Shown here piece by piece: positions 1,293 through 62,162 of a stretch of 64,000 nucleotides of DNA. This DNA comes from Macrostomum lignano (Eukaryota). The stretch spans positions 124,001 to 188,000 of the forward strand of contig NIVC01000195.1 in the NCBI GenBank assembly GCA_002269645.1, read 5' to 3'. The notes beneath the pieces were generated by a model that was not told the DNA's origin, made no database searches, and was given only the letters and a program-made list of their open reading frames with translations. A program made the translations under genes and the position numbers. The stretch's first letter is position 1, and each line of letters starts with the position of its first letter.

Positions 1293-3668
1293 TCATTTGC
1301 ATATCATCTTGGCGGCCTTTTTCAGTGCTTCTGCAGCCAGCTCGTCTTGAGTCTTCAACTTTCGCTTCAGCAGCTTGGCGTCATCATGTAGAGCTTTGGC
1401 CTCTCGCTCTTCTAAAGTCCTCATTTTTTTCTGATACTCGAGCAGCATAGCCGAAGCAGCTCGCTTCTCAGCTTCAATTATTTCACGCTCTGCAGCCAAC
1501 TTTTTTTCAGCCGCCTCCAATTCCATCTTCTTCTTGTTTACTTCAATCTCAGCAGCAAGCTGCTCTTCCAACTGTTTAGCGGCAATCCGTGCATCTTTCT
1601 TGGCCTTATCAGCATCTCTTTGCTGTTGAAGGAATTCCATGTACACTGAACGAGCCTTCCCAGCAGACTGAACGTAGACGTCTGTCAATGGAAAGTTTTC
1701 GCAGGTTGTAGGCTCCTCACCAACTAGCCCAGATTGGCGGATGTAGTGTCGAACAAAAAGGCAGGCATCAATAGACAATTCACCAAGCTTGTTGCGTTTT
1801 TTCGTTAACAAGTCCGATAACTCGCTAAAGACTCGCTCTACTGCAGCGTTGCCTGGCTGAATGGTCAGAGCACCCAAAGCTAGTCGGGTTAGTGTGCCGT
1901 ACTTTTTTTGACCACCAAGCTCTAGGGCTGACACGCGAAGCCAAAATGTAACCACATCATTGTCCTTAGCCAAAGCCACTACCTGTTGGTCAACGAGGAA
2001 GCATCGCCATTCGGAATCAATTTTTGATACGGAATCAGGTGTATATTCCATTTGTTTGGCTAGGTTACATGCAGCAAGCGATGTAGTAGCTGCTGCGAGA
2101 CCGACTTTCATAGGATATTGCGGATCCAGAAATTGTAGCGAGCGTAAGACAGGATTCGACAGAGGCAAATGTTCTTGCAAGTACAATGCAAGTTCACGAT
2201 AGAAGGTGCGAACACGTAGGAAAAAGAGCTTCTGTTGAGTGTCCGACAAGCCTTTTTTTAATGTCTCTTTAGCTGCTTCGCCGATAAAGATGGCTTCATT
2301 AGAGAGGAAGTATTTGCCTTCCAACGACAAATTTCTCAAATGTCGATTGTTCTCCTGAATGTGCGCTGGATTTAAAAAGAATGACAAAGTCTGCCTAAAC
2401 AAATTGCGGACTTCTCCATGCAAAAGATGGACACACGGCTCCTCTGTCTGAAATGCCTTCTCGAATTGGTCTAGATGCGGCAAGACAGCAGCCAGAAATT
2501 GCAGATTAAGCAGTGTATGCGTCGACTTTAGGTGCTCAGCAATTTCTTTGGTCTTTTTGGTCTTTTGCTCAATCAGAGATGGATTCTTCACAAAGAATTC
2601 TTCCAGAGAATCATATTGCTCAATAAGCCTATTAACAACAGGCAAAAGCTGCACCCATCTTGTTTCAACGCGCCGCAACATGCGATGCTGGGCCACTTGA
2701 AGCAGTGACTGAACTTTGTTATAACGCGTCCACCTTTTCGAGGTCTGAAAGTAGGAGAACACTTCATCAGCGAAGTCCTCTACATTTCCATCAAAGGCTT
2801 CACATGCACGTCGAACCGCATTGGAGACAATATGCAAACTGCATGGTCCAATGGAAACAAGATGAGATGCAAAGTCATGCATTATTTTTTGGAAGCCGTT
2901 AAACTTTCCAACCATAACTGCTGGTCCATCTGTTGATATGCTAACACAGTTCCTAATCGGAATGTTGAATTCATCGAGAATCTTCAAAACTTCCTCTTTC
3001 AGAGCAGCGGCTGAGCAGTCAGAAACTTCAACTGTTTTCAAGGCAGTTGTACACAGCCTTCCCTTCTTCGACGACACAAATGATATTACAACTGCCATGT
3101 GCTTTCGTGCCCCATCAGATGACTCGTCAATAGAAAGGGAAAACAGTCCGCAGCCAGAGTTCAAGTCTTGAATCATCTCATCACGCATCACTGGTGCAAG
3201 AGCGTGATTAACAAGATAGCACAGTTTTGTGCGATGGCACTTCATGTCTTGAGCAATTTTGCTATCATGAAACATAGCTGGGTACACACCCGAGTGGTCG
3301 GCTGTATTGTACGCAATATTGTGCTCAATAAAATGGATTCCAAGTCGCAGCTCTGCCATTAGCACTTCTGCGTCAGCCTTCTTCATGGCAGTGAAAGATG
3401 GCTTGCTGCCTTGAGTAGGAAAAAAGTGTGCTATCCCAGTCTCATTCATGACTGGCAATCGACTCTTGTGCTTCTTGCCTTGGGCGTGGGCTGTAACTGC
3501 GCCGAACCCACTAGTGCCGAGGTGAAATGATTTTTTGCACACGGTGCAGAAGCCAAGCAGTTCGTCACTTCGATCAGGCTGAAGCCACTCGCTAAGGACT
3601 CGTCCATCAATGGATCGCTGTAACCACTCATGTCGAAATGCTGTTGCACGAGGCTTGCTTAGAGACAT
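1293..3668 (-). CDS. hAT transposase, 791 aa, uninterrupted
   Basis: BED-like finger (CTVC...H...H), DDE residues in SIDESSD / STDG / AVERVFS, CxxH (CSLH), TRW motif, hAT dimerisation-like region, K/E-rich C-terminal tail. Confidence 0.93.
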   Translation of the reverse strand: MSLSKPRATAFRHEWLQRSIDGRVLSEWLQPDRSDELLGFCTVCKKSFHLGTSGFGAVTAHAQGKKHKSRLPVMNETGIAHFFPTQGSKPSFTAMKKADAEVLMAELRLGIHFIEHNIAYNTADHSGVYPAMFHDSKIAQDMKCHRTKLCYLVNHALAPVMRDEMIQDLNSGCGLFSLSIDESSDGARKHMAVVISFVSSKKGRLCTTALKTVEVSDCSAAALKEEVLKILDEFNIPIRNCVSISTDGPAVMVGKFNGFQKIMHDFASHLVSIGPCSLHIVSNAVRRACEAFDGNVEDFADEVFSYFQTSKRWTRYNKVQSLLQVAQHRMLRRVETRWVQLLPVVNRLIEQYDSLEEFFVKNPSLIEQKTKKTKEIAEHLKSTHTLLNLQFLAAVLPHLDQFEKAFQTEEPCVHLLHGEVRNLFRQTLSFFLNPAHIQENNRHLRNLSLEGKYFLSNEAIFIGEAAKETLKKGLSDTQQKLFFLRVRTFYRELALYLQEHLPLSNPVLRSLQFLDPQYPMKVGLAAATTSLAACNLAKQMEYTPDSVSKIDSEWRCFLVDQQVVALAKDNDVVTFWLRVSALELGGQKKYGTLTRLALGALTIQPGNAAVERVFSELSDLLTKKRNKLGELSIDACLFVRHYIRQSGLVGEEPTTCENFPLTDVYVQSAGKARSVYMEFLQQQRDADKAKKDARIAAKQLEEQLAAEIEVNKKKMELEAAEKKLAAEREIIEAEKRAASAMLLEYQKKMRTLEEREAKALHDDAKLLKRKLKTQDELAAEALKKAAKMICK

Positions 3669-5944: not shown

Positions 5945-6170
5945 AAAGATCTAGATGAATGCTGTATAGATCTAGATGAATGCTGTATAGATCTAGATGA
6001 ATGCTGTATAGATCTAGATGACTGATGTATAGATATAGATGCCTGCTGTATGGATATAGATGCCTGCTGTATGGATATAGATGCCTGCTGTATGGATATA
6101 GATGCCTGATGTATAGATCTAGATGTCTGCTGTATACAGTAGATATAGAGGCCTGAGATATAGATATAGA
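5945..6170. repeat. Degenerate 21-bp minisatellite, ~10 copies
   Basis: Unit ATAGATCTAGATGAATGCTGT and variants. Confidence 0.85.
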
Positions 6171-6179
6171 AAATCTAAC

Positions 6180-8702
6180 AAAGCAACTTACACACCCACC
6201 AAAGCAAGCTACACACCCTAGATTGCAACCTAGACACCCGCCAAAGCAAGCTACACACCCTAGGTTGCAACCTAGACACCCGCCAAAGCAACCTACACAC
6301 CCGCCAAAGCAACCTACACACCCGCCAAAGCAAGCTACACACCCGCCAAAGCAACCTACACACCCACCAAAGCAACCTAGACACCCTAGATTGCAACCTA
6401 CACACCCGCCAAAGCAAGCTACACACCCGCCAAAGCAAGCTACACACCCGCCAAAGCAAGCTACACACCCGCCAAAGCAAGCTACACACCCGCCAAAGCA
6501 AGCTACACACCCGCCAAAGCAAGCTACACACCCGCCAAAGCAAGCTACACACCCGCCAAAGCAAGCTACACACCCGCCAAAGCAAGCTACACACCCTAGA
6601 TTGCAACCTACAACCTACACACCCGCCAAAGCAAGCTACACACCCTAGATTGCAACCTACACACCCGCCAAAGCAACCTACACACCCTAGATTGCAACCT
6701 AGACACCCGCCAAAGCAAGCTACACACCCTAGGTTGCAACCTAGACACCCGCCAAAGCAAGCTACACACCCGCCAAAGCAACCTACACACCCGCCAAAGC
6801 AACCTACACACCCGCCAAAGCAAGCTACACACCCGCCAAAGCAAGCTACACACCCGCCAAAGCAAGCTACACACCCGCCAAAGCAAGCTACACACCCGCC
6901 AAAGCAAGCTACACACCCGCCAAAGCAAGCTACACACCCGCCAAAGCAAGCTACACACCCGCCAAAGCAAGCTACACACCCGCCAAAGCAAGCTACACAC
7001 CCGCCAAAGCAAGCTACACACCCGCCAAAGCAAGCTACACACCCTAGATTGCAACCTACACACCCGCCAAAGCAAGCTACACACCCTAGATTGCAACCTA
7101 CACACCTGCCAAAGCAAGCTACACACCCTAGGTTGCAACCTAGACACCCGCCAAAGCAAGCTACACACCCTAGGTTGCAACCTAGACACCCGCCAAAGCA
7201 AGCTACACACCCGCCAAAGCAAGCTACACACCCTAGATTGCAACCTACACACCCGCCAAAGCAAGCTACACACCCGCCAAAGCAAGCTACACACCCTAGA
7301 TTGCAACCTACACACCCGCCAAAGCAAGCTACACACCCGCCAAAGCAAGCTACACACCCTAGATTGCAACCTACACACCCGCCAAAGCAAGCTACACACC
7401 CTAGGTTGCAACCTAGACACCCGCCAAAGCAACCTACACACCTGCCAAAGCAACCTACACACCCGCCAAAGCAAGCTACACACCCGCCAAAGCAACCTAC
7501 ACACCCGCCAAAGCAACCTAGACACCCTAGATTGCAACCTACACACCCGCCAAAGCAAGCTACACACCCGCCAAAGCAAGCTACACACCCGCCAAAGCAA
7601 GCTACACACCCGCCAAAGCAAGCTACACACCCGCCAAAGCAAGCTACACACCCGCCAAAGCAAGCTACACACCCGCCAAAGCAAGCTACACACCCTAGAT
7701 TGCAACCTACACACCCGCCAAAGCAAGCTACACACCCTAGATTGCAACCTACACACCTGCCAAAGCAAGCTACACACCCTAGGTTGCAACCTAGACACCC
7801 GCCAAAGCAAGCTACACACCCTAGGTTGCAACCTAGACACCCGCCAAAGCAAGCTACACACCCGCCAAAGCAAGCTACACACCCTAGGTTGCAACCTAGA
7901 CACCCGCCAAAGCAAGCTACACACCCGCCAAAGCAAGCTACACACCCGCCAAAGCAAGCTACACACCCTAGATTGCAACCTACACACCCGCCAAAGCAAG
8001 CTACACACCCGCCAAAGCAAGCTACACACCCTAGATTGCAACCTACACACCCGCCAAAGCAAGCTACACACCCGCCAAAGCAAGCTACACACCCTAGATT
8101 GCAACCTACACACCCGCCAAAGCAAGCTACACACCCGCCAAAGCAAGCTACACACCCTAGATTGCAACCTACACACCCGCCAAAGCAAGCTACACACCCT
8201 AGATTGCAACCTACACACCTGCCAAAGCAAGCTACACACCCTAGGTTGCAACCTAGACACTCGCCAAAGCAAGCTACACACCCTAGGTTGCAACCTAGAC
8301 ACCCGCCAAAGCAAGCTACACACCCTAGGTTGCAACCTAGACACCCGCCAAAGCAAGCTACACACCCTAGGTTGCAACCTACACACCCGCCAAAGCAAGC
8401 TACACACCCGCCAAAGCAAGCTACACACCCTAGGTTGCAACCTACACACCTGCCAAAGCAAGCTACACACCCTAGGTTGCAACCTAGACACCCGCCAAAG
8501 CAAGCTACACACCCTAGGTTGCAACCTACACACCTGCCAAAGCAAGCTACACACCCTAGGTTGCAACCTAGACACCCGCCAAAGCAAGCTACACACCCTA
8601 GGTTGCAACCTACACACCTGCCAAAGCAAGCTACACACCCTAGGTTGCAACCTACACACCTGCCAAAGCAAGCTACACACCCTAGGTTGCAACCTAGACA
8701 CC
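6180..8702. repeat. 21-bp two-variant minisatellite, ~120 copies, intronic
   Basis: Units CCCGCCAAAGCAAGCTACACA and CCCTAGATTGCAACCTACACA interspersed. Confidence 0.97.
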
Positions 8703-13141: not shown

Positions 13142-16100
13142 TCTTCGAAGCTAGGGTTTCTTCTGTGTGGTCCATTGGCTGCCGCCGAGTCAGTGAAAGA
13201 TCAACAGACCGTTTCCGCCGATCAAGTTGAATGTAGCGCTGCCCAGACCTTGTGCTGTAGTGCTCCCGTAGACGATCTCTCCTCTTTTTGGCGGCTTGAA
13301 GCATTGGGAATCTGTGAACGTCAGGAAGACGCTGCAGAAAGTTCCTTTAACTGTCACCCGGAGCTAGAGAACGGTAGATATACCGTAAAATTGCCGTGGA
13401 AATATCCAGAAGGCTCCGTGCCGTTGAGAGACCACTTTGATATGGCGTATAAGAGACTGAGTACCACACTCCGTGCACTGCGAAAGGAACCTGAGACTCT
13501 AATGAAGTACAGTGAAATCATCTCAGAACAGGAAGCATCTGGCATAATTGAAAAAGTGCCTGAGGAGGATTTAGGCAATAAGAACTGCCACTATCTACCC
13601 CATCACCATGTCACCAAGGCCGACAGTGAGTTCACACGGTTACGCATTGTCTTTGATGGATCGGCCAAAAGTCGGGGTGGAGACGTCTCTATTAATAATC
13701 TACTTCACGTCGGTCCAACTGATGTTCCGCTGATACCAGAAATTCTGATGCGGTTCCGTATCAATCCTATTGCTGTCACAGGTGACATCGAGAAGGCCTT
13801 TCTGCAGATAGCCATTGAAACTCAGGACAGAGATTACTTACGATTTTTGTGGACTCTCCCGAGCGAGCCAAACAACGTTTTTCACTACCGATTCTGTCGG
13901 TTACCGTTCGGTCTCACGTGCTCTCCTGGTATCTTGCGAGCTACGGTAGTTCAACACCTTGATTTTCACCAGCAGACCTTTCCAACGACCGTCAATGTCA
14001 TTCGCCGAGACCTATACGTCGACAATTTAGTTACTAGCTGTAAATCTCTAACGGAAGCCCTCCAGCTGTATCAGGATACTAAAGTGATATTCAAGTCCGC
14101 AGGCATGAATATGCGACAGTGGAAGTCCAATTTGGATTCGTTTAATAGGTCGGTGCCCGGTCAGGATGTCGGTCACGCTGAGAGAGTTCTAGGGCTCCGC
14201 TGGGACTCTATTCAGGATGTCTTCCTCATTCACTTCCAGGATCTGGTTGACAAGGCTATTGCCTCGCCTTCCTCTAAGCGGTTGATGTTAGGAGTGCTTG
14301 CCTCGGTGTACGATCCATTGGGCGTTCTATCGCCTGCTTTGACCGTTGTCAAGGTGCTGTTGCAAAAGCTGTGCGTTCGAAAGTATGGTTGGGACGACGA
14401 ACTACCACCAGACATCGCCGAGATTTGGAACCAGTGGTTGCAGTCATTGATGCACTCGCAGTTTGTAATTCCTCGTTATTTATTCGCCACTCTCGAGTCA
14501 GTGCCGACAAAATTGGAGCTGCATGGATTCTGTGACGCCAGTTCATCAGCGTATGCCGCCTGTGTGTATATCAAGGCTTATTCGGACACAGGCAAGATTA
14601 CGACGCAGCTAATTCAGGCAAAAACGCGCGTAGCACCGCTTTCGAATCTTAGTATCGCCCGACTGGAATTGTTGGGAGCTCTCATTTTGGCGCGTCTGAT
14701 GCGAATGGTTTCGTCTCAGTTTCCGAAGGTTCCTCGTTATCTCTGGACAGATAGCAGGACGACTCTCTTGTGGATTACGAACACAGAAAAACTTCGACCG
14801 GTTTTCGTCCAGAATCGCATCAAAGAGATTCGACTTCTAACTTCGACATCTGAATGGCGACATGTTCCGGGGGAGTTGAATCCTGCCGACCTGCCGTCTC
14901 GCGGCTGTCTGCCGGAACAGCTGCAGAATAATGCTGTGTGGTTAAGCGGTCCCAACTTCCTTCACACTTCCTTCTACCAGCCTTCGCCTGACGATCTGCA
15001 GTTAAGCGTTGCTGCTGAGGACTTCATTACAGGAGTAGTGTCACAAAGTGATGACCAGAGCGAAGGAGCACATAGTACACTGCACGTCTCTTCCGTCGTT
15101 GACATAAGTAGATTTTCACGTTATTCCCGTTTAGTACGCGTCCTAGCTTGGATAAGGAGATTTGTCAGCAACCTTAAAAGTAGTCTAGTCGGTCAGACGA
15201 CTAACAGAGCAGTAGCACTGACAGCACACGAGCTCAATACTGCAGAAGAGCTTTTGTTGATGTCAGTTCAACGACAAGAACTTTCAAAAGAAATTTGTCA
15301 CATTCAGAATGGTTCGGCGGCCACACCACTAAATAGAGATTTGAATCTTTGGCTGGACGAAGTTGGTCTGTTGCGTTCGCGCGGTCGGATTTCGGTGATG
15401 TCCTTCGATGTAAACAATCCGATCTTAGTACCTCGACACAGTCCGTTAGAGCAGCTCATAATTCGAAACGCTCATCAGGCAGTTGCTCACGAGGGAGTCG
15501 CGTCGACGCTATGTAAGGTCCGTGAAAAGTACTGGATCGTGAAAGGCCGTCAGCGAACAAAGCAGGAATTGTCGAAGTGCGTAGTGTGTAAAAAGATTCA
15601 AGGACGCTCCTACACAGTACCTCAGATTTCTCAGTTACCGGACTTTCGTCTTGCCGATATTCGACCTTTTCAATCCGTCGGCATTGATTATTGTGGTCCG
15701 ATGTTCTATCGGACGGGGGAGGATGGTAGTGAAACGGGAAAAGCGTATGTACTACTGTTCACGTGCTCCTCCACTCGCGCAATTCATCTAGAACTACTTT
15801 CTGATATGACTACAGCTCAGTTCTTGAACGGCTTACGACGATTTGTCAGTCGGAGAGGAATACCTTCCATTATCAGTGATAACGCAAAGACCGCTGCACC
15901 AGTAACGAGCTGGAAAGTACTGGATCGTGAAAGGCCGTCAGCGAACAAAGCAGGAATTGTCGAAGTGCGTAGTGTGTAAAAAGATTCAAGGACGCTCCTA
16001 CACAGTACCTCAGATTTCTCAGTTACCGGACTTTCGTCTTGCCGATATTCGACCTTTTCAATCCGTCGGCATTGATTATTGTGGTCCGATGTTCTATCGG

Positions 16101-23359: not shown

Positions 23360-24830
23360 GCACAACGAAACAAACAACAACAAAATACGCGGCCCCGCAT
23401 GCAGCGTCAGTTACAGCAGGGCGCGTCACATGGCGCGCCGCAGAGCCTGGGAGCGCTTCGTTGGCAGTGCCGGGCACCCCAGCGTCGCACAGCAGGCAGT
23501 CCACATATCGACGGGTTCGGGTCTGACCCCGCCTGAATGGGCCCTGCAAGGTGAGCAGCAGGACGTCCTGAACAGGTTGGGGGCAGTAGCCCTCGGCCCG
23601 GATCACGTGGCCCGCTAGTTGAAGTCGCCGCCGGCGCAGGATCGTGGACAGGCGCTGCAGCTTGGCCCGATCGTACAGGGCCTCGGTCCTGACGCTCTCG
23701 TCAGCTCGAAAGGCCGCACGGAGCAGCCCTGAGTGTACCGAGTCCAGCTGCCGCTCTAGCGTAGCCGTCAGCGTAGCCGTAGCCGTTGTAGAGCAGGACG
23801 GTTTCGACCACCGCCGAACCTCAGAGCGCTGTGTCAGCAACCCCAGGAGTGCTACTCGTTGTGGAGAGACTTCCGGGAGAGGGTGAGGTTGCTGGAGAAG
23901 GGGAGTAGTCGATAGTAGGTTCCTACGGTTGATAACAACAACAACAACAACCACGGCCTGTCACAGCCGAGCCCTCTGGCGGTCGGGCAGCGCTTCGGAC
24001 TGGAGGACGGCTTGGATTGAACGGAAGGCCGCACCCTCTGCGCCGCCAGAGGTCCTCCTTCACGTGAGGCCGCTGGGATGCCGGCCGGCACAGTCAGCAC
24101 CTCGGTCACCTCAGCGTGTTGACAACGAGACCGACGCTCGGTGCCACCTCGACCAGCTTGTCGATCTGGCGCTGGGCGCCTTCAACGGACGAGGACAGAA
24201 GGGTGAGGTCGTCGGCGTAGCCAGGCACGCTCAGTCGCTTTTCGCCGTGGCGGCGACCGATGCGTCTGCGCATCAGGAAGCCGTCGTCAGCCGAGGGGAG
24301 TGCGGTCCGAAGCACCCAGTCCAGCAGCAGCACAAAGAGGAACGGCGCCAGCGTGTCGCCCTGCAGAACCACAGCACCTCGAGTGTCGCAATACAGCGCC
24401 ATGACAGCGTCGACCGGCTTCTGGGGTACCTGGTAGGCTCGAAGGACAAAGGGAAGCGCGGCTCTCAACAGCGAGTCAAATGCCTTTCGAAAGTCAACTA
24501 AGACAATGATCAGCGTAGACTGGCGGATGCGCGCCTCCTCGATGACACAGCGGAGTGCGAGGATCTGTGTGGTACGGGTACGGTACGGCTCCAGCACCGA
24601 CTGCAGACGATCGAGCAGCAGCCGGTTGAAGAGCTTCGCGGTGCAGGAAATCAGCGAGATCCCGCAGTGGTCTTCTTTCCGTGTTGTCTTTATCGGGATC
24701 GGCACGATGTGCGCGACGGTCCACTTGGTGGGCCGGCCTGGTGTTTTTCGAGCGAACAGCACAACGTCCTCCGTGGTGACTGGTCTGGTGCAGAGTTCCT
24801 CCTCAGCTGGGAGCGGCGTGTCCAGTGGGA
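23360..24830 (-). mobile_element. Degenerate RTE-clade non-LTR retrotransposon fragment
   Basis: RT motifs GISLIS.TAKLFNR, VDFRKAFDS, LQGDTLAPFLF, YADD (ORF 24106-24762). RTE-like C-terminus RRRRLQLAGHVIR...RRG...YVD. (TTG)n-like tail near 23365-23385. Boundaries approximate. Confidence 0.8.
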
Positions 24831-25042
24831 GCGCACACTCATAACTTCAACTCGAAGCAATAGAGAGCGATAGCGACGGAATATAAAAAAGAATATTGGC
24901 CTTCAAGCAAAATGAGTTTTGCATCGGTCATCTGTTTACTACTGCTTAATATCAGGTATAATATTTCTGTTTAAAGGAATTCCATGCGATGATATACAAG
25001 CTCGTACATATAAGGAAATGTTAAAATATCAACTCAAAGCTC

Positions 25043-26626
25043 TTAAAAGTCCACGACTATCACGAAGCAGCAGGAGTCGCTCGCGCGCTCAGCCGCGCAG
25101 ACTCCTCTCGGACACGGACACGAAGACGCCGCCGCACCTCGCCGAGCGGCCGCTGTTCCACGCGTAGCTCGCCGCCTTGGCCAGCCGGGGCCGCAGGCTC
25201 GCGGAGAAGCGCCGGCCACCCTGGCGAACACCCGCATGCCCTGGCGCAGCACCCGCTCCAGTTGGGCCCGGACAGCCGGCCGGCCAGCCAGGAGGCTCTT
25301 CACGCTGACCACCGGCAGGCCGCGGCGTCTGCTGCTGCCGGCCGAGAGGACGCGGCCGAACAGCGGGAAGCGCCGGGCGCCGGGCCGCGGCTGCACGGCG
25401 AGCTCCACGACTTGCTGGCCGCCACCGCCGCCGCGGCTGAACAGCGACTTGCGCACCGAGCCGCTTCCAAAGCGTTGCCATGACAACCGGGACACACTTC
25501 CGGGCTGACCGACCAAGCGCCAGGGAGACCAGGTGAGAGCGGCCAGCCCAGCGGGCAGGTGCCTGTCGGAGCAGGTCTCCCGGCGAGTTCGGACCGCCCT
25601 TGCAGCCCGCGCCCGCGAAATTCTCGCAGCTGCCATGATGGACTTCGTGACGGTCTTCGTGACGGGCTTCGTGACGGGCTTTGTGACAAGCTTCGTGACG
25701 GGCTTCTTGACGGGCTTCGTGAAGGGCTTCGTGACGGGCTTCGTGACGGTCTTCGTGACGGGCTTCGTGACGGGCTTCGTGACGGGCTTCGTGACCGACT
25801 TCTTCGCCTTTCCTGAAGTTCCGGCGGTCACCGCCTTGGCAGTCTTTGTTCGCCTCGCCGCAGTCTTTGTCCCAGTGGCTGCCCCGGACGGGTCGGCGGC
25901 GACGCTGCTGGCCGCCAGGGTGGCCGCCGACGAGCGGCGCACGAGGCCCAGCATGGCGCTCACGTCGCCGGCCAGCGCGGCGCCGTCCCTGGCGCGCACC
26001 TCGCGCTCGTAGCCGTCGCGAAGGATGTCGGTGCCGCCCTCCCGGTAGGCGATGGCCATGAGGAAGTCGCGAACGCCCCGGAACTCAGCCAGGGGGAGCC
26101 GCAGGCCGCCGGTCACCTTGGCGACGTGGTCCATGAAGCTCTGCGAGTTCCTGCTGCTGCCGCACTGCACGCAGTACACTGTGACTCCCAGCTGGTGCAG
26201 CAACTCGGTCTCCGCCTTCCAGTCGATCTTGTACTTGTTCCTGGCGCTGCCCACCTCGTGCGGGAAGGCGTCGCCGACAAGCACCAGAGCGCGGCTGCTG
26301 TGCGGGCGCCAGCTGAGGCGGGTGCGGGCCTGCTGCAGCACCAGCTCGTAGCACTCGGGCTCGTCCCCGCCGTGCGTGCCCTGCACAGTCTTGGCGAACC
26401 GCACCAGGTCCGCTGTGGAGGTGCCGAAGTCGCGGATCTCCGTCTCGTACCTGTCCCCGTAGTCTCCGTGAGCGATGAGGGCCACGCTCAGGTCCGGGAT
26501 GTCGGTGGCGAGCCGCTGCAGCATCTCGGCGATGTTGCTGCGCACCTCGTTGATGACGGAGCCCATTGAGCCGGTCGTGTCGAAAGAGAAGGCCAAGTCC
26601 AGCGGCTGAGCTCCAGGGAGTGCCAT
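25043..26626 (-). CDS. Intronless vWA-domain protein with Lys/Thr repeats and an ET/GIY-YIG-like C-terminal domain (probable frameshift near 25215)
   Basis: vWA motifs DLAFSFDTTGSM, GDY.D, GGDEPECYE, LVLVGDAFPH; (KPVT)n repeat; C-terminal RRETC...WSPW...VVELAV...RVFARV. YAWN lies in another frame that ends at 25089. TATA box upstream. Confidence 0.85.
   Translation of the reverse strand: MALPGAQPLDLAFSFDTTGSMGSVINEVRSNIAEMLQRLATDIPDLSVALIAHGDYGDRYETEIRDFGTSTADLVRFAKTVQGTHGGDEPECYELVLQQARTRLSWRPHSSRALVLVGDAFPHEVGSARNKYKIDWKAETELLHQLGVTVYCVQCGSSRNSQSFMDHVAKVTGGLRLPLAEFRGVRDFLMAIAYREGGTDILRDGYEREVRARDGAALAGDVSAMLGLVRRSSAATLAASSVAADPSGAATGTKTAARRTKTAKAVTAGTSGKAKKSVTKPVTKPVTKPVTKTVTKPVTKPFTKPVKKPVTKLVTKPVTKPVTKTVTKSIMAAARISRARAARAVRTRRETCSDRHLPAGLAALTWSPWRLVGQPGSVSRLSWQRFGSGSVRKSLFSRGGGGGQQVVELAVQPRPGARRFPLFGRVLSAGSSRRRGLPVVSVKSLLAGRPAVRAQLERVLRQGMRVFARVAGASPRACGPGWPRRRATRGTAAARRGAAASSCPCPRGVCAAERASDSCCFVIVVDF
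25645..25800. repeat. 12-bp coding repeat encoding (KPVT)n
   Basis: (CTTCGTGACGGG)n, ~13 copies, in frame in the vWA ORF. Confidence 0.9.
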
Positions 26627-26717
26627 GTGTTTATTGAGAAAGCGTTCGGTTCAGAGTCAGAAGCTTGGCAAGGTTTTGCTCTGTGTCTGAGCAGCTGGTC
26701 GGAGTCCGGAGGCTCGC

Positions 26718-26724
26718 TTATATA
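26718..26724 (-). promoter_or_regulatory. Candidate TATA box of the vWA gene
   Basis: TATATAA on the minus strand in GC-rich context, ~92 bp upstream of the ATG. Confidence 0.55.
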
Positions 26725-27087
26725 GACTTTTACAGCACGGGCACCGCGTGTGGCGACACGCCGACTCAGTTTCTCTGCCTTCCTCCCTGATTGAACTCAA
26801 CCCGCCCCGAAGCTAAAAATAGAGAAGCGGTGAGCCCCGCTGCCAGAGGTAGGGTTGGGGCTGTACTCGGCTGCAGGCCTGCAGTACGCCTGTTGAACGG
26901 GCTTTTTTCTTTGCAAAGAAAGTGCAGGCAAAGCCAAAATCTTACCGCGTGTGGCCACAAGCGCGGTGACCACATTAGGCACAAAAATGAGTTTATTATA
27001 GAAACGCATTAAGTATGCATTGAATAAAACAAAGGTTGAACAAAGGTTTAGCTTGAAGCGACTTGAGAAGCAGCTATAGATAGTATA

Positions 27088-27195
27088 TTAATACCCATGC
27101 TTTAAGGGCGTGAATGAGAAATTCTGATTTCTCTGATTTCTCAGAAAAAGGCGCCCTCTGATTTCTCATTTATGCCCGCAAAGCATGGGTATTAA
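27088..27195. mobile_element. 108-bp hairpin mini-MITE with TTAA ends
   Basis: TTAATACCCATGCTT ... AAGCATGGGTATTAA is perfect; the imperfect inverted match extends to ~35-40 bp. Confidence 0.6.
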
Positions 27196-27364
27196 TGAGA
27201 TTGTGCCATAGACATTTTTGCCTTGGCAAGGCTGCGAGAGAAAAAATAAAAGAGCAGGGAAAGTGGCGGTGTGGGGGCGAAAATATGAGAAACAGGGCCG
27301 TTTTTTTATTAAAGTTATAAAAATATTATAGAACATAGCGTCCTTTTACTTCAGCTGTCCATGG

Positions 27365-27958
27365 TCAGCATTCCAAGGAGGCCAGCTCGGCCTCCGCCTT
27401 CGGCTTCTCTTCTTCTTTTTGTTGTTTCTGCTTCTTGCAGAGGTAGCAGCAGCAGGCGGTGATGAGGACGCCGCAGCCGGTGCAGAAGGCGATGGAGAAG
27501 TTGAGCACCAGCAGGGCGATGCGCATGAGCAGGGTGAACCTGGCGAACAAGAACATGGGCTTGTGGCAGTAGCTGCCTGCGCTGGCGGGGATGGTGGTTG
27601 CGTTGCCAACGGGCGGCACCAAGGGCGACTCCGGCAGGGTGAACACCGGGTCGGTGCCGAAGACCCAGACGCAGCCGCAGATGAACCAGATGACGACGAA
27701 CAGGTCCAGCAGCAGCAGCAGGCATCCGCAGCAGGTGACTTCATCGCGTTCTTCCCGCCGGCTCCGGTTCGTCAGCAGGCTGGCCAGGTTGCTCACGGTC
27801 AGGACGATGCCAGTGCAGCCGGCCACCACCAGGTAGACGGGCACCTTCGGCTGGGCTGGACAGTCGTACAGGTACATGGAGCCGACGACGATCTCGGCGA
27901 CGCTGAGGCCCACGTCAGCCAGGATCAGGCAGAAGATGACAAAATTTCTGCAGCTCAT
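27365..27958 (-). CDS. TMEM272: Intronless TMEM272-like membrane protein, 197 aa
   Basis: Four hydrophobic helices with family motifs IVVGSMYLYDCPAQPKVPVYLVVAG, WFICGCVWVF, YCHKPMFLFA. AATAAA at 27305-27310 (minus). Confidence 0.82.
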   Translation of the reverse strand: MSCRNFVIFCLILADVGLSVAEIVVGSMYLYDCPAQPKVPVYLVVAGCTGIVLTVSNLASLLTNRSRREERDEVTCCGCLLLLLDLFVVIWFICGCVWVFGTDPVFTLPESPLVPPVGNATTIPASAGSYCHKPMFLFARFTLLMRIALLVLNFSIAFCTGCGVLITACCCYLCKKQKQQKEEEKPKAEAELASLEC

Positions 27959-28024
27959 GGCGGCGGCGGGAGGCGGGCAGGTGGGGCTGCTTCACACTTG
28001 CAGCCGCTGCGCCCTTTGCGGCCC

Positions 28025-41700: not shown

Positions 41701-41839
41701 CTGTCCACCATTCGCTATTCATCCTTCCCCGAATACGTGTGCTTCCTCATTCCACATCTCTTCTGGAATTAAGAAGCTCTTACCCTTCTACCTGTCTTTA
41801 AAGCATCTCTAATTTCCCTTCCCCGACATCGCTCCCCAC

Positions 41840-42385
41840 CTGGTGACTGTCGTCCAGCAGACGGAAGTGCCTGGCCGCCTGGATGCAGATGGCGGCGGCG
41901 GCGCCGGCCAGGCTGGAGTAGCGGTCCAGCGACCAGCGGAAGCGCCACTCCCGGGACCGGTCCTCCGAGGCGACAAACAGCGACCTGGCCGGGCCACTGA
42001 GGAACAGCTTGCTGAAGGCGTACTCGGAGGCGTACAGCAGCGACACCAACAGGACCACCACGCCGAGCTTGGCCGCCGCGGCTGCCAGAGTGAAGCCCGG
42101 CCGGCGGTCAAGAGTGGCCTGGCAGACCCGGGGCCAGGCGACCGCCATGAAGAAGGTGACCAGGAACCAGTGAGACACCAGCGGCACAAAGTAGTAGAAC
42201 TGGTAGGGCCGGTTCATGACCAGGCAGAGGCACACCACCAGCACGTTCATGCGGAACAGCACGCGCAGGCCGCGCACCAGGCAGCCCTTGAAGCCGCGAG
42301 ACCAGAAATAGGTCATGTGACCGAAGCCGGATAGGAACAGGTAGCTGGACACGCACACCCGGATGTGCATGTACACCGGGAGCAC
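41840..42385 (-). CDS. CASD1: CASD1 exon 3
   Basis: VLPVYMHIRVCVSSYLFLSGFGH, MNRPYQFYYFVPLVSHWF, EWRFRWSLDRY. Confidence 0.95.
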
Positions 42386-42489
42386 CTGGGAACGGGGGCG
42401 AAGTGAATTAGCGGTGCAAGTTTGACTAATTTTGGGATTGCTGTTTATCTTGAGTGATTTGGGGATTCGGAGGATACGGACACAGAGGC

Positions 42490-43405
42490 TTGGGATTCGG
42501 GGATAGGGACACGGAGCCTTGGGATTTGGGGGACACGAAGCCTTGGGATTTGGGGATAGGGACACGGGGTCTTGGGATTTGGCGATAGGGACACGGAGCC
42601 TTGGGATTTGGGGGACACGAAGCCTTGGGATTTGGGGATAGGGACACGGAGCCTTGGGATTTGGGGATAGGGACACGGAGCCTTGAGATTTGGGGATAGG
42701 GACAGGGAGCCTTGGGATTTGGGGGACACGAAGCCTTGGGATTTGGGGATAGGGACACGGAGCCTTGGGATTTGGGGATAGGGACACGGAGCCTTGGGAT
42801 TTGGGGATAGGGACACGGAGCCTTGAGATTTGGGGATAGGGACAGGGAGCCTTGGGATTTGGGGGACACGAAGCCTTGGGGTTTGGGGATAGGGACACGG
42901 AGCCTTGGGATTTGGGGGACACGAAGCCTTGGGATTTGGGGATAGGGACACGGAGCCTTGGGATTTGGGGATAGGGACACGGAGCCTTGGGATTTGGGGA
43001 TAGGGACACGGGGTCTTGGGATTTGGCGATAGGGACACGGAGCCTTGGGATTTGGGGGACACGAAGCCTTGGGATTTGGGGATAGGGACACGGAGCCTTG
43101 GGATTTGGGGATAGGGACACGGAGCCTTGAGATTTGGGGATAGGGACAGGGAGCCTTGGGATTTGGGGGACACGAAGCCTTGGGATTTGGGGATAGGGAC
43201 ACGGAGCCTTGGGATTTGGGGATAGGGACACGGAGCCTTGGGATTTGGGGATAGGGACACGGAGCCTTGAGATTTGGGGATAGGGACAGGGAGCCTTGGG
43301 ATTTGGGGGACACGAAGCCTTGGGATTTGGGGATAGGGACACGGAGCCTTGGGATTTGGGGATAGGGACATGGGGCCTTGTGATTTGGGGATAGGGACAC
43401 GGGGT
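42490..43405. repeat. 24/29-bp G-rich minisatellite, CASD1 intron 2
   Basis: Unit GGAGCCTTGGGATTTGGGGATAGGGACAC. Confidence 0.95.
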
Positions 43406-43438
43406 CCAACAAACAGGGCCCAGACACCCAGACCCTAC

Positions 43439-43957
43439 CTGCGAGGCGGAGGTCATGTGGTACACCAGGATGATGAGCTGGGCCACTCCCTTCCACTCGT
43501 CCGTGACATCCCGGTGCAGCAGCTGGGTGTACTGCGAGTTGTCGGTGAAGAACAGCCCCAGGACCAGCACGTACAGCAGCGGGATGACAAAGTTGAGCGC
43601 GGTGAAGGTTTTGTTCTCCTTCATGAAGAAGGAGGTCCGGTCGCAGACGAAAAAGTAGCCGAGCACGAGGCCCAGCTTGGCCAGAGCGCAGGCGAGCTCG
43701 TGCAGCGAGTCGATGACGGAGAAGGGGCTGGCGTCCGAGCCGGTGCGCTGGTGCGTCATGGCGTAGGTCGGCTTGAGGCGGCGGCCGCCGTCCTTGCGAA
43801 CGAATGCGTTGAACAGGCAGAGCAGGCCGGCCACCACAGCCCAGCAGGCGAAGAAGGCGAAGGTGAGCAGCTGGCTGATGGTCACGGGCTCCGGCACCGA
43901 GCAGCAGGTGCCGTCCGAGTACTTCATGTGGTTGTTGCAGTAGAAGTTGGCCAACAC
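43439..43957 (-). CDS. CASD1: CASD1 exon 2
   Basis: NFYCN...DGTCC, YFFVCDRT, LHRDVTDEWKG. Confidence 0.95.
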
Positions 43958-44039
43958 CTGGTTGGGAAGATGGAATTGTTCCGAAATGGAATGAGGAACA
44001 TGGGATAAGGCGTATGGCTGGAGAAATGGGAAATACCGA

Positions 44040-44415
44040 ATGGGAGCATGGGGAATACGGGATGGGGTATGGGGGATACAGGGTGGGATATGGGAAATAC
44101 CAGATGGGATATGGGGAATAGCGGATGGGATATGGGGAATAGCGGATGGGATATGGGGAATATACCATAGGATATGGGGAATAGCGGATGGGATATGGGG
44201 AATATAGGATAGGATACAGGGAATAGCGGATGGGATATGGGGAATATGGGATAGGATATGGGGAATAGCGGATGGGATATGGGGAATACCGGATAGGATA
44301 TGGGGAATAGCGGATGGGATATGGGGAATATGGGATAGGATATGGGGAATAGCGGGTGGGATATGGGGAATACCGGATAGGATATGGGGAATAGCGAATG
44401 CGATATGGGAATACC
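44040..44415. repeat. ~21-bp minisatellite, CASD1 intron 1
   Basis: Unit GGGATATGGGGAATAGCGGAT. Confidence 0.9.
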
Positions 44416-44454
44416 AGATTGCCAAAAGTGCTTTAAAGGGAGAAAATTCCCGAC

Positions 44455-49672: not shown

Positions 49673-50164
49673 ACAGGATCAGAGCACTAAGGGATTGAAC
49701 ATTCAATAGGAAATGATGAGAAGAGCCCGAAGTTTGATTTCTTTATCCCGTCAGTCTGAGGCTGGCCTGCATTTCCGCACCAAATAGAGAAGACAGCCGA
49801 AGTGCATTTCATTAAAATGCTCAGCTTTCTGCGACTGGCGCCTCAGCTGCTCTTTTTGCTTGGTTAGCTCAGTTCATATTTACAGTTTAAGAGGCTCCGG
49901 GAGGCAAAACTGGGGCACGGGATCGATCCCGATAGAGGCCAGAGTCTCCGCATCCATATCCGTTCTTCCTTTAATTAATGAGCCTCTCGACTCGCACCTG
50001 CACGCAGGAGCTTCGCTTTGTTGAGGCCTCGGCAGCGCTAATTGCTAGGGGGCTCAGCCAGTTCAGCTGCCGCTCGGTCACGTACGGCGGGTGAGTGTCG
50101 TCTCATGTGGCCGCCTTGCGGCAGTCACTCGCAACAGGTGTCATCTGTTTGCGTTATGGGCCGT

Positions 50165-51110
50165 TGTCTGATATCTGTAGACTGCTGTCTGATATCTGTA
50201 GACTGTTGTCTGATATCTATATACTGTTGTCTGATATCTATAGATTGTTGTCTGCTATCTATAGATTGTTTTCTGATATCTATAGACTGCTGTCTGATAT
50301 CTATAGGCTGTTGTCTGATATCTATATACTGTTGTCCGATATCTATAGACTGCTGTCTGATATCTATAGGCTGTTGTCTGATATCTATATACTGTTGTCT
50401 GATATCTATAGATTGTTGTCTGCTATCTATAGATTGTTTTCTGATATCTATAGACTGCTGTCTGATATCTATAGGCTGTTGTCTGATATCTATATACTGT
50501 TGTCCGATATCTATAGACTGCTGTTTGATATCTATATACTGTTGTCTGGTGTATCTATAGACCGTTGTCTGATATCTATTGATTGTTTTCTGATATCTAT
50601 AGATTGTTGTCTGATATCTACAGACTGTTGTCTGATATCTATAGGCTGTTATCTGATATCTATAGACTGCTGTCTGATATCTATAGATTGTTGTCTGGTA
50701 TCTATAGACCGTTGTCTGGTATCTATAGATTGTTGTCTGATATCTATAGATTGTTTTCTGATATCTATAGATTGTTTTCTGATATCTATGGACTGTTGTC
50801 TGATATCTATAGACTGTTGTCTTATATCTATAGATTGTTTTCTGATATTTATAGACTGTTGTCTGATATCTATAGGCTGTTATCTGATATCTATAGACTG
50901 TTGTCTGATTATCTATAGACTGTTGTCTGATATCTATAGATTGTTTTCTGATATCTATAGATTGTTTTCTGATATCTATAGATTGTTTTCTGATATCTAT
51001 AGATTGTTTTCTGATATCTATAGATTGTTTTCTGATATCTATAGATTGTTTTCTGATATATATATACTGTTTTCCGATATCTATACACTGTTGTCTGATA
51101 TCAATAGACC
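50165..51110. repeat. 21-bp minisatellite, ~45 copies
   Basis: Unit TGTCTGATATCTATAGACTGT. Confidence 0.95.
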
Positions 51111-51999
51111 GTTACCTGATGTCTTTAGACAATTGGGACATCTAGCTATATAAGTATTTATGCAATATGTACATAAAAGACAAAGCAATAGGATTGCCCA
51201 GATTTGCAATCTATTAGACTAGCAATCCAATATATAATTAATAAGCTGGACCATCAACACACACTGAATCACGCTCCGGTTTGGAAAATCGCAGCTGGCT
51301 AAAAAATCAAAGCCGGAGGCACGTGAGAGGCCGCAGGTTCAAGTGTCCTTTCAAATTTCTGCATGCAAATCAACTGCAGCCAGCCGTCTCTCAGCCGCTT
51401 CACTGCTCGCACAATCTGGGGTTACCATGGCAACAAAACACTTTCCCTCTTCTGCCGAGATCGAAGGGCAGAAGCTGGAGGCCGCCCAGAATGAAAGCCG
51501 GGAGGACGGCTCGCAATTGGCGCAGCTGCACTTTGTGTGAGCGACTCCGTGGCGACTAACAGGAAGAGGCCACTCAGGCTGCCTCTGTCTCTGCTGCAGC
51601 CTCACCCCCTTCCTCTGCCCCATCACCCCCCTGCCCGGCTTCCCAGCCTCCATTGGCCCGGCAACAGACAGGGCGCCCTCTCCAAGCGGGTTAAATGCCT
51701 GCTGGTCGCCTCAGCAGCCTGGCCAGCCTCCCAAGTCTCCCTCCGGCTTCTCTACCTCGATGCCATCGGGAGGGCACCGCGGCCGCAGCCAAAGCCGCCG
51801 AACCCGCGGCAGCTGCCTGTCCCGGCGATGCTGCTGCTGCGGGGCCGACGGGGAGTCCGACAGCGGCCGGAGCAGCAGCGAGGGGGACGAACACAGCGGC
51901 GGAGGCTCCGGCCTCGATTGCGTTGAGGATGTCGAAAGATCCGCGTCAGTGAGACTGCTCTGCGCCTCCGAGCGGCTGCTGCGGCAGTCCGATGACAAG

Positions 52000-59600: not shown

Positions 59601-60049
59601 GGGTAGATTGACTCTGTCTTTCTCGCACACCTTCGCTGATCAACCCTCCCAAATATTTGGTCATCCATTGCAAAAATAATCCTATGTCTAATCTTCGTGC
59701 ATTGCCTACTGGAAGTAGAGAGGGCCCAAGTGTCTAAATATTTATTCACATCGGAGGAAACGATCTGCTCTCAAACCAGTCCCTACCCAGGTGGTCCTGT
59801 AGCTAACTGATGCCGTCAATATCCAATTTGGAAAATAGGAGACGAAAGCAGCTGCTGGATGGATAACAAGATGACGCTAGATGCCAATCCGGAGCCCGAT
59901 ATCCAGCTGCTTCTGGGATAAATTGGTCAAACCAATCTTCTGTTGCAAAACAGTCCTACAGCTCCACTTGAATAGAGCGCAATTGAGCAAGCAGCTCTGC
60001 GCCTGCATTTAGCCTGCAATCACGGCTGCTTGCGCTCTGTGCGCTTCTG

Positions 60050-61560
60050 ATTCATTTTCACCCTCCTCTTCACCCTCCTCTCCACCCTCCTCTCTACCCT
60101 CCTCTCCACCCTCCTCTTCACCCTCCTCTCCACGCTCTTCTCCACCCTTCTCTCCACCCTCCTCTCCACCATCCTCTCTATCCTCCTCTCCACCCTCATT
60201 TTCACCTCCCTCTTCACCTTCCACTTCACTCTCCTCTTCATCATTCTGACCTCCTTTACACCTGCCAGTTTACCCTCCTCTTCGCCTCCTCTCCCCTCCT
60301 CTGCCCTCCTCTCCCCTCCTCTCCCCTGCTCTCCCTTCCTCTCCCCTCCTCTGCCCTCCTCTCCCCTCCTCTGCCCTCCTCTACTCTCCTCTACCTTCCT
60401 CTCCCCTCCTCTGCCCTCCTCTGCCCTCCTCTCCCCTGCTGTCCCTTCCTCTCCCCTCCTCTGCCCTCCTCTCCCCTGCACTCCCTTCCTCTCCCCTCCT
60501 CTGCCCTCCTCTGCCCTCCTCTCCCCTCCTCTGCCCTCCTCTCCCCTGCTCTCCCTTCCTCTCCCCTCTTCTGCCCTCCTCTCCCCTCCTCTGCCCTCCT
60601 CTGCCCTCCTCTGCCCTCCTCTGCCCTCCTCTACCCTCCTCTACCCTCCTCTGCCCTCCTCTCCCCTGCACTCCCTTCCTCTCCCCTCCTCTCCCCTCCT
60701 CTGCCCTCCTCTCCCCTGCACTCCCTTTCTCTCCCCTGCTCTCCCTTCCTCTCCCCTCTTCTGCCCTCCTCTCCCCTCCTCTGCCCTCCTCTGCCCTCCT
60801 CTGCCCTCCTCTGCCCTCCTCTACCCTCCTCTACCCTCCTCTGCCCTCCTCTCCCCTGCACTCCCTTCCTCTCCCCTCCTCTCCCCTCCTCTGCCCTCCT
60901 CTCCCCTGCACTCCCTTTCTCTCCCCTCCTCTGCCCTCCTCTGCCCTCCTCTCCCCTCCTCTGCCCTCCTCTCCCCTCCTCTGCCCTCCTCTCCCCTCCT
61001 CTGCCCTCCTCTCCCCTCCTCTGCCCTCCTCTCCCCTCCTCTGCCCTCCTCTCCCCTGCTCTCCCTTCCTCTCCCCTCTTCTGCCCTCCTCTCCCCTCCT
61101 CTGCCCTCCTCTCCCCTGCTCTCCCTTCCTCTCCCCTCTTCTGCCCTCCTCTCCCCTCCTCTGCCCTCCTCTCCCCTCCTCTGCCCTCCTCTCCCCTCCT
61201 CTGCCCTCCTCTGCCCTCCTCTCCCCTCCTCTACCCTCCTCTACCCTCCTCTGCCCTCCTCTCCCCTGCACTCCCTTCCTCTCCCCTCCTCTGCCCTCCT
61301 CTCCCCTGCTCTGCCATCCTCTCCCCTGCTCTCCCTTCCTCTCCCCTCTTCTGCCCTCCTCTCCCCTCTCCCCTCCTCTCCCTCTCTCCCTCCTCTCCCT
61401 CCTCTGCCCTCCTCTCCCCTCCTCTGCCCTCCTCTACCCTCCTCTCCCCTCCTCTACCCTCCTCTACCCTCCTCTCCCCTCATCTTACCTCCTCTCCCCC
61501 CTGTCCCCTGCTCTCTCCCCCTCCTCCTCTCTCTTTCCACTCGTCTTTACCCCTCCTGTT
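60050..61560. repeat. 1.5-kb polypyrimidine/polypurine tract (10-bp unit)
   Basis: (CCTCTCCCCT / CCTCTGCCCT)n, almost all pyrimidines on the plus strand. Confidence 0.96.
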
Positions 61561-62162
61561 CACCCTCCCTGGTCTCCATTAAATAAACGTCCCCATGTCT
61601 CCCTCTGGTGACTCTTTTTCTCCGAGCTGGGCTTCAATGCTCTGTCGAAGGCTTACTTCTGTTCTCAAGCAGAGTTTGAGCAAACGCTCAAATCTTCCAA
61701 AGAGTTCAGCTCGCGGTCATCCTTGGTTGGAACCAGCCCTTAATCTAACGAATTTCTTAGTTCGCTACTGCGCAGTAGCGGCCTGCGACTATTGGCATTT
61801 CTATTTAAGAAGCCCCCAGGGACTCCCTCGGGTGAGGATCTGATTGAAGGCAGATCCACTGGGATTTCGCAGCGGATTATCGCGCTGGCCCCAACAGTTT
61901 GTTGTTCCAGGAGGCTGCGGCTGCCATTTTGGCATCCGACTGCTCAGGGAGGGGAGTCGCTGAGCTAAGCCAGCTTAATTAATAGTCATGATTAAACATT
62001 AATGAGAGCAGCACGGCTGAAGGCCCCGTGTTTAGCGAAGTGGCGCCGCGCCCTCCGCTACTCAGTCGTCGCTCTCTGCTTGCTCTGCGAGCAGCAACTC
62101 AGCCTGCAAGTCTCGCAGGATCCCCCATACAATTTCTCACCTCCTCCTCCGCCTCTCCCAAG

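Follow-up and report, generated by a model that had tools for sequence, protein, structure and literature searches.

A vWA protein with a basic linker and a GIY-YIG-like PF19239 domain in Macrostomum lignano: a candidate non-catalytic adaptor from a conserved spiralian family

What kind of protein is encoded on the minus strand at positions 25043 to 26626 of a 64,000-nucleotide stretch of the flatworm Macrostomum lignano, and would its nuclease-like C terminus still cut DNA? The stretch (referred to here, at its full length, as the window) covers positions 124,001 to 188,000 of contig NIVC01000195.1 in assembly GCA_002269645.1. M. lignano is a model flatworm with transgenesis and RNA interference, used in stem-cell and regeneration work. 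A first-pass annotation, made from the sequence without database searches, had described the gene as an uncharacterised fusion of three elements, i.e., a vWA domain with a metal ion-dependent adhesion site (MIDAS), a histone-H1-like basic repeat, and a C-terminal domain resembling the GIY-YIG-like domain of plant EFFECTOR OF TRANSCRIPTION (ET) and HRT proteins. Our analysis suggests, with a probability of roughly 60%, that the gene belongs to a conserved spiralian family with a vWA/basic linker/PF19239 architecture and that its product acts as a non-catalytic nuclear adaptor. The anatomy of the protein and its family assignment are held with high confidence, and the adaptor mechanism, taken by itself, stands at about even odds.

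A three-part protein conserved among spiralians

The locus holds an uninterrupted open reading frame (ORF) of 527 amino acids (ATG start, TAA stop) in sequence of ~60 to 63% G+C. This is evidently not a chance ORF, because it has full-length homologues in Haliotis, Lottia, Dreissena, Mytilus, and the annelid Dimorphilus (E values of 1e-62 to 1e-52) and because every motif listed in the first-pass annotation falls in a conserved column. All of these motifs were found, with SYAWN in another frame, as the mention of a frame repair had implied. The protein consists of an N-terminal vWA domain with a conserved helical extension, a basic linker, and a C-terminal domain of ~160 to 165 amino acids (Table 1). 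The same three-part architecture was identified in abalone, limpet, mussels, scallop, apple snail, and Dimorphilus; the fusion of the vWA and C-terminal domains is thus found in molluscs, one annelid, and flatworms. Being common to these groups, the architecture is evidently old within Spiralia.

In M. lignano itself, the family numbers at least eight gene models, which form four pairs. The top database matches of the window protein are M. lignano proteins with 88 to 95% identity, and gene models of this species match it at 95 to 100%. In one pair (Mlig023510g1 and Mlig028846g1; P0021 and P0288 in our protein set), the vWA domain is degenerate (AFNTIQLFDS versus SFDTTGSM, with AHGDYGD lost) and the C-terminal domain is intact, suggesting that the C-terminal module may function without a MIDAS.

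In the literature library searched, neither a vWA/PF19239 fusion nor an ET-type domain in animals was described. Neither domain type is new to the catalogues, and databases list the proteins as "VWFA domain-containing" or "uncharacterized"; what is new is the combination of known domains.

Family membership of the C-terminal domain

A profile built from the C-terminal domains of 11 vWA-fusion proteins was run against 1.84 billion cluster representatives. This exhaustive search recovered 280 clusters at E ≤ 1e-3, including 177 at E ≤ 1e-10. Among the best 145 of the 280 clusters, 36 matched PF19239 at E ≤ 0.01, the top match (1.3e-45) being a Mercenaria protein with six tandem copies; VWA_4 was matched in 21 of the same 145 clusters and VWA (PF00092) in 19. 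When the C-terminal profiles were used in word-indexed homology searches, only five and three proteins came back, none of them a plant ET protein.

The curated cut-off of PF19239 (21.4 bits) was exceeded by the hidden Markov model consensus of the vWA-fused subfamily (24.1 bits; E = 3.5e-5), by the consensus of the wider family (34.2 bits), and directly by an abalone fusion protein, P0142 (26.2 bits). Matches below the cut-off were obtained for Pomacea (E = 0.0026) and for P0006, P0131, and P0185 (E = 0.025 to 0.054). When the fusion subfamily was aligned by hhalign with eight canonical-looking PF19239 domains, the two were related with 98.5% probability (E = 3.4e-15; 145 columns). In an alignment of 128 family domains, from which all residue frequencies below are taken, RRE, WSPW, VVELAVQ, VFARV, and SYAWN of the window protein align to invariant or near-invariant columns and follow the family order of RE, WSxW, (Y)E strand, VR(R) strand, and DYAW.

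These profile comparisons place the C-terminal region in PF19239 at the family level. Of the ET/HRT-type, GIY-YIG-like C terminus claimed at first pass, the family membership and the order of the motifs stand; Foldseek did not confirm the fold, and the flatworm sequence alone has no PF19239 match. The label does not extend to the protein as a whole, which is not an ET/HRT protein because it lacks the Cys-rich ET repeats.

The vWA domain and the linker

The MIDAS-type vWA domain proposed at first pass is real. The window protein matches Pfam VWA_4 (PF25106) with an E value of 2e-5 (24.6 bits, slightly below the 27-bit cut-off), and orthologues with 33 to 60% identity pass PF00092 (36.4 and 44.5 bits versus a cut-off of 23.8). 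Across 40 clade members, DTTGS, T84/D88, and D119 show little or no variation; the MIDAS site that they compose is apparently complete, and metal binding is predicted. The alignment of the window protein with 39 bacterial or metagenomic relatives (36 to 42% identity) showed that DTTGSM, AHGDYxD, GGDxPECYEL, and GDxxPH are all invariant. The clade thus carries invariant His, Asp, Cys, and Glu motifs besides the MIDAS, common to members from bacteria through to the flatworm, and these hint at a second metal or ligand site.

By sequence, the vWA domain is closest to uncharacterised bacterial proteins of ~355 amino acids and to a chytrid protein. Bacterial, chytrid, and SWIM+RING-fused members of the clade (P0016 to P0079, P0014, and P0068) share a C-terminal domain of ~120 amino acids without a Pfam model (…RFQVLEVD…GRGFYEFTK…STSxNRKL…FLYEV). 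We considered this bacterial GRGFYEF domain as a cryptic ET-type relative and ruled it out (hhalign probability, 0.3%). Other eukaryotic members of the vWA clade are fused to nucleoplasmin, CCCH fingers, WGR, or SWIM+RING, and one scallop fusion protein carries an AT-hook; the eukaryotic fusions appear to have a chromatin flavour, which we count in favour of an adaptor role. A phmmer comparison of the whole protein with PDB sequences gave only low-complexity noise, and a profile of the vWA clade found no sequence relative there. Scans of the window protein and its bacterial vWA relatives with NCBIfam and PADLOC models detected no defence system and no named family, and the gene neighbourhoods of bacterial vWA relatives (two loci) showed no conserved operon.

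The basic (KPVT)n linker is likewise real, and its repeat is a tandem array of a 12-bp unit (Table 1). Across 24 fusion proteins, the linker has median values of 27.5% K+R, 3.5% D+E, and 80 amino acids, and a basic, acid-poor linker is evidently a property of the family. The KPVT repeat is private to the Mlig020601/Mlig013221 pair (~13 and ~5 units) and is not found in other paralogues or in orthologues; in the paralogue Mlig029225, the linker is rich in Lys, Ala, and Pro, without the repeat. The comparison thus reveals a low-complexity linker of ~80 to 120 amino acids across the family, evidently expanded as a (KPVT)n microsatellite in one paralogue pair. Since the repeat is private to that pair and the linker of Mlig029225 is non-repetitive, the term "histone-H1-like" describes a likeness of composition only; no linker-histone domain (the globular winged-helix domain of H1/H5) was matched in Pfam at E ≤ 1.

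A frame break in the window copy

The frame repair anticipated by the first-pass annotation is needed, and it can be specified to a single base, a detail absent from the annotation. Aligned with an intact paralogue (NIVC01002499.1, model Mlig013221g1; locus L001), the window copy shows one isolated single-base gap. Because of this deletion, the last 39 conserved residues are replaced, among them the Trp of DYAW, which is invariant in the family. In the ancestral frame, the window copy translates onward as ...ASLRPRLAKAASYAWNSGRSARCGGVFVSVSERSLRG and then reaches the stop codon that it has in common with the paralogue. The two copies differ by 12 synonymous and 11 non-synonymous codons. Past the break, four codons differ, and in the ancestral frame three of these changes are synonymous; at the codon level, the gene pair is evidently under purifying selection. 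The SYAWxSGR...SV tail is kept in six other M. lignano paralogue models and in one 60%-identical protein from another sample. Because the ancestral frame is open to the common stop, the differences are mostly synonymous, and the tail is kept elsewhere, the break reflects either a homopolymer error in the assembly or a lesion that arose very recently. We take the assembly to be based on long reads, in which such errors in C-runs are common. An exact-sequence look-up with the frame-repaired protein found nothing, a result that is uninformative. The deposited annotation of the window locus is wrong at its 3' end.

A lesion of this kind could also mark the window locus as a dead copy, i.e., a recently pseudogenised duplicate in a transposon-rich region, which would be compatible with the family model. 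The 1-bp deletion removes the conserved tail together with an invariant Trp, a reverse-transcriptase fragment lies 300 bp downstream with hAT and BEL/Pao elements nearby, and the genome has at least seven other family models. However, the remaining 1.4 kb of the ORF is intact, the ancestral frame past the deletion stays open to the same stop with mostly synonymous differences, and the deletion lies in a C-run of an assembly that is presumably long-read based. We consider a dead copy unlikely, while according it appreciable weight.

Replacement of the catalytic residues

The GIY-YIG superfamily is defined by the two motifs that give it its name, together with a central Arg and a C-terminal Glu; an Asn is often present as well (PMC1564403). 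In the family alignment, the GIY position is occupied by Tyr in 84% of domains, Phe in 9%, and Val in 5%, the Val cases being M. lignano copies. At the YIG position, Tyr accounts for 59% and Phe for 16%, and M. lignano has Phe (PLFGRV); the loss of both tyrosines noted at first pass is thereby borne out. Arg is found at its canonical position in 16% of domains, Glu in 26%, and Asn in 23%. According to the hhalign mapping, M. lignano has Ser in place of the canonical Arg and, in place of the Glu, a residue that is not acidic (Pro/Arg); the Asn is kept. The flatworm protein thus lacks four of the five residues by which an active GIY-YIG nuclease is judged, and the canonical Arg, Glu, and Asn are unconserved throughout the vWA-fused subfamily. 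The invariant residues of the family are others: the Glu that directly follows the GIY position, an Arg of the third strand (VRR), and two Trp residues, that of DYAW and the second one of WSxW. Canonical-looking relatives in which Tyr, Tyr, Arg, Glu, and Asn are all kept include repeat 6 of Mercenaria P0125, P0176, and P0216. Read most simply, these substitutions point to a module that derives from a nuclease and has given up classical DNA cleavage; this applies to the vWA-fused subfamily as a whole, with the flatworm as the clearest case.

Alternatively, the C-terminal domain may still be an active DNA nuclease or nickase with a non-canonical site formed by the invariant Glu, the third-strand Arg, and DYAW, cutting DNA, for example, in repair, in programmed genome processes, or to fend off mobile DNA. 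Such activity would agree with homology to a family named for a nuclease fold, with the complete residue sets of the three relatives mentioned above, with the invariance of the Glu, Arg, and Trp columns in all 128 domains, and with the retention of the first Tyr in 84% of them; in addition, nicking of DNA has been reported for the plant ET2 domain (PMC6585611, citing Ivanov 2008). The invariant residues could equally be structural, however, and both the unconserved Arg, Glu, and Asn positions of the fusion subfamily and the Val, Phe, and Ser of M. lignano at the Tyr, Tyr, and Arg positions speak against catalysis. We regard an active enzyme as improbable.

Predicted structure and the GIY-YIG fold

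An AlphaFold2 model of the C-terminal domain, based on a 66-sequence alignment, reached a predicted local distance difference test score (pLDDT) of 89.4 and a predicted template modeling (TM) score of 0.86. The model has an N-terminal beta-hairpin region, followed by strand-strand-helices-strand-helices, an order of predicted elements that fits the GIY-YIG core. The AlphaFold and Foldseek check recommended in the first-pass annotation for the frame-repaired region gave a mixed answer, i.e., no significant PDB match and a strand/helix order compatible with GIY-YIG. With the whole-domain model (175 amino acids), T4 endonuclease II (EndoII; TM-scores of 0.30/0.38) ranked 39th and Hpy188I ranked 45th, and EndoII had the highest TM-scores among the 50 matches listed. 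A Foldseek search of BFVD, which holds predicted viral structures, had two top matches to unnamed viral proteins (E values of 1.8e-3 and 4.5e-3; TM-scores of 0.49 and 0.41), which we take from their accession series to be chlorovirus proteins.

Several results weigh against the reading of this domain as a nuclease-derived adaptor module of PF19239 type. The M. lignano C-terminal domain alone has no match in Pfam even at E ≤ 10. Profiles of the fusion subfamily, compared with PDB sequences, found no GIY-YIG structure and only chance matches to ribosomal proteins. In the Foldseek searches against the PDB, nothing was significant for the 175-residue model (best E value, 0.11), and a 112-residue core model (pLDDT of 81.8) had no significant match and no GIY-YIG match. 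That PF19239 ("GIY_YIG_domain") is the domain type of plant ET proteins is our assumption, made together with the motifs listed in the first-pass annotation. Finally, the first Tyr (84%) and the invariant Glu beside it are retained by most of the family other than the M. lignano copies, so that an unconventional catalytic arrangement may exist. On the predicted models, the GIY-YIG fold of the C-terminal domain is neither confirmed nor contradicted.

One could go further and suppose that neither this domain nor PF19239 is GIY-YIG at all, but an unrelated alpha/beta domain with mimicking short motifs, in which case the nuclease analogy would be misleading. The lack of a significant Foldseek match for two confident models fits this idea. 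Sequence links to classical enzymes are sub-significant as well: a profile of canonical-looking members, searched against 177,635 PDB sequences at E ≤ 10, had only two matches, T4 EndoII (0.048) and the GIY-YIG domain of UvrC (0.14). Both of these sole matches are GIY-YIG nucleases, though, and the EndoII alignment passes in the expected order through the YIG strand, the Arg helix, the Glu, and the WN motif; the link between PF19239 and classical GIY-YIG enzymes appears weak but specific. The presence of EndoII and Hpy188I among the weak Foldseek matches, the order of secondary-structure elements, and the name given to the family by the Pfam curators point the same way. We judge a mere mimic to be a little less probable still than an active nuclease.

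Origin of the gene

Retroposition and horizontal transfer, both put forward at first pass for a gene correctly described as intronless, are unneeded as recent events, because the architecture is widespread and the mollusc genes have introns. In the limpet and abalone orthologues, an intron lies at about amino acid 150, and the limpet gene has another at about amino acid 205, all within the vWA part; the Dimorphilus gene, like that of M. lignano, has none. The block common to the window and the paralogous locus (24888 to 28015) includes 1.4 kb of upstream sequence and a 197-amino-acid ORF, which makes it a poor fit to a retrocopy. A recent acquisition by M. lignano, to which the intronless 1.58-kb ORF and the ~40% identity of its vWA part to bacterial proteins could be assigned, is very improbable given the same three-part proteins in molluscs and Dimorphilus, the introns within the vWA part, and the duplicated upstream block. 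The vWA part may nevertheless go back to an ancient bacterial source.

Proposed function

The first-pass annotation had proposed an inactive nuclease fold used for DNA or chromatin binding; the replacement of the canonical residues agrees with the first half of this proposal, and the fold lacks confirmation by Foldseek. We infer that the C-terminal domain is not a nuclease and may serve as a DNA- or chromatin-binding module. The lysine-rich linker would contribute a non-specific affinity for DNA or target the protein to the nucleus, and jointly with the nuclease-derived domain it would hold the protein on DNA or chromatin. A vWA MIDAS generally binds an acidic residue of a partner through a metal ion. 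The MIDAS face of the vWA domain could recruit a partner protein in this metal-dependent manner, through an acidic residue of the partner, and the whole protein would then be a nuclear adaptor that brings the partner to DNA.

If this reading is right, the family offers a case from animals in which a GIY-YIG nuclease fold has been converted to a binding function, as well as a traceable domain swap in which a bacterial-type vWA protein keeps its N-terminal half and exchanges its C-terminal domain; it also provides a candidate nuclear factor in M. lignano. A more speculative proposal, to which we give only about one chance in four, is that these proteins are spiralian-wide chromatin or genome-surveillance factors. 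In such factors, a nuclease-dead GIY-YIG module (common to plant ET proteins and possibly to algal giant viruses) would read DNA structure or modification, and a bacterial-type MIDAS vWA domain would recruit an effector. The "plant-specific" ET nuclease module would then have had an independent animal career in a different architecture.

The locus and its neighbourhood

The features of the gene are collected in Table 1. The ORF matches the gene span of model BOX15_Mlig020601g1 (NIVC01000195.1, assembly GCA_002269645.1) without a single difference. The deposited protein has 506 amino acids, and its sole difference from the ORF is 63 nt skipped within the repeat. The deposited models at L002 (6001 to 7584) and L001 (6001 to 7443) are 63 and 51 nt shorter than the uninterrupted ORFs, in both cases entirely within the KPVT repeat; this shortfall looks like an annotation artefact or a repeat-length polymorphism of the transcripts used. 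The gene had been called TATA-driven at first pass. A suitable motif exists at the expected side of the ATG (Table 1), and its role as a promoter element is putative.

Table 1. Features of the vWA/PF19239 gene, in window coordinates
Feature	Position	Strand	Remarks
Whole ORF as assembled, 527 aa	25043..26626	-	Last 53 codons outside the ancestral frame
vWA domain with conserved helical extension, aa 1-231	25934..26626	-	Pfam VWA_4 below cut-off; orthologues pass PF00092; ~40% identity to bacterial vWA proteins
MIDAS-type motif DTTGS (DxTxS variant), aa 16-20	26567..26581	-	Clade-invariant
Further clade-invariant motifs	AHGDYxD 26453-26473; GGDxPECYEL 26342-26371; GDxxPH 26258-26275	-	
Basic, acid-poor linker, 116 aa	25586..25933	-	23% K+R, <1% D+E
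12-bp tandem repeat x 12.8 encoding (KPVT)n	25643..25795	-	Tandem Repeats Finder, 90% matches; copy number varies between paralogues
PF19239-type (ET-type) GIY-YIG-like domain, frame corrected at 25204/25205	25089..25585	-	RRE, WSPW, VVELAVQ, PLFGRV, MRVFARV, SYAWN
C-terminal motifs	RRETC 25571-25585; WSPW 25520-25531; VVELAVQ 25391-25411; MRVFARV 25217-25237; SYAWN 25155-25169 (other frame)	-	
1-bp deletion, CTCCC to CTCC versus paralogue NIVC01002499.1	25204..25205	-	Frameshift
Ancestral stop codon TGA	25089..25091	-	Common to the intact paralogue
TATATAA motif, possible TATA box	26718..26724	-	98 nt upstream of ATG; motif match only

Directly upstream on the same strand (27365 to 27958) lies the hydrophobic, membrane-protein-like ORF of 197 amino acids mentioned above, which was co-duplicated with the gene (96% identity to positions 4657 to 5347 of L001); it has no Pfam match and is absent from the deposited annotation. 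Approximately 300 bp downstream of the gene, also on the minus strand, a 218-amino-acid ORF (24106 to 24762) matches a reverse transcriptase (RVT_1; 3e-15) and looks like a locus-specific retroelement insertion, because similarity to the paralogous locus stops at 24888. Four further segments of the window, at 1293 to 3668 (-), 13175 to 15979 (+), 41798 to 44425 (-), and 50095 to 51153 (+), contain a hAT-type transposase, a BEL/Pao retrotransposon pol (peptidase A17, reverse transcriptase, and integrase), a CASD1-like exon block of a 10-transmembrane acyltransferase (1.9e-111), and a weak BAG6-like match. Strand composition is extremely skewed at 6001 to 8000 (GC skew, -0.46; AT skew, +0.54) and at 60001 to 62000 (GC skew, -0.70; AT skew, -0.62), suggesting low-complexity or satellite sequence in both segments.

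Comparison with known systems

The Mercenaria mercenaria protein P0125 (XP_053393955.1) belongs to the same C-terminal domain family (E = 2e-32 to the fusion profile) and differs from the window protein in having no vWA domain. It carries a transposase-type helix-turn-helix followed by six tandem PF19239 domains, some with the full catalytic set and some degenerate, and it represents a different, equally unstudied architecture.

The bacterial and chytrid vWA proteins of ~355 amino acids (VWA_4/PF25106) resemble the window protein in their vWA domain, which is 36 to 49% identical and contains DTTGSM, AHGDYxD, GGDxPECYEL, GDxxPH, and the helical extension, whereas their C-terminal domain is another one (GRGFYEF...STSxNR...FLYE). 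With the classical GIY-YIG nucleases (i.e., the UvrC N-terminal domain, T4 EndoII, and I-TevI), the flatworm domain shares a distant similarity through the canonical-looking PF19239 members and the strand/helix order of the model. It differs from these enzymes in the replacement of Tyr, Tyr, Arg, and Glu, in an extra N-terminal beta-hairpin region of ~60 amino acids, and in having no significant Foldseek match.

Plant ET1/ET2 and HRT are alike in the PF19239-type domain, as judged by the family-level tests, and in the order of the RE...WSxW extension, (V/I)YE, ...VR(R/W), and DYAW(N) that the first-pass annotation had given. The ET proteins lack a vWA domain and carry Cys-rich, zinc-binding ET repeats in their C-terminal part; ET genes are described as plant specific and confined to plants (PMC6585611). 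The window protein, in contrast, ends ~20 residues past the DYAW motif, with no Cys-rich repeat and no further Pfam match; its PF19239-type domain is C-terminal, has lost the canonical catalytic residues, and is fused through a basic linker to a vWA domain.

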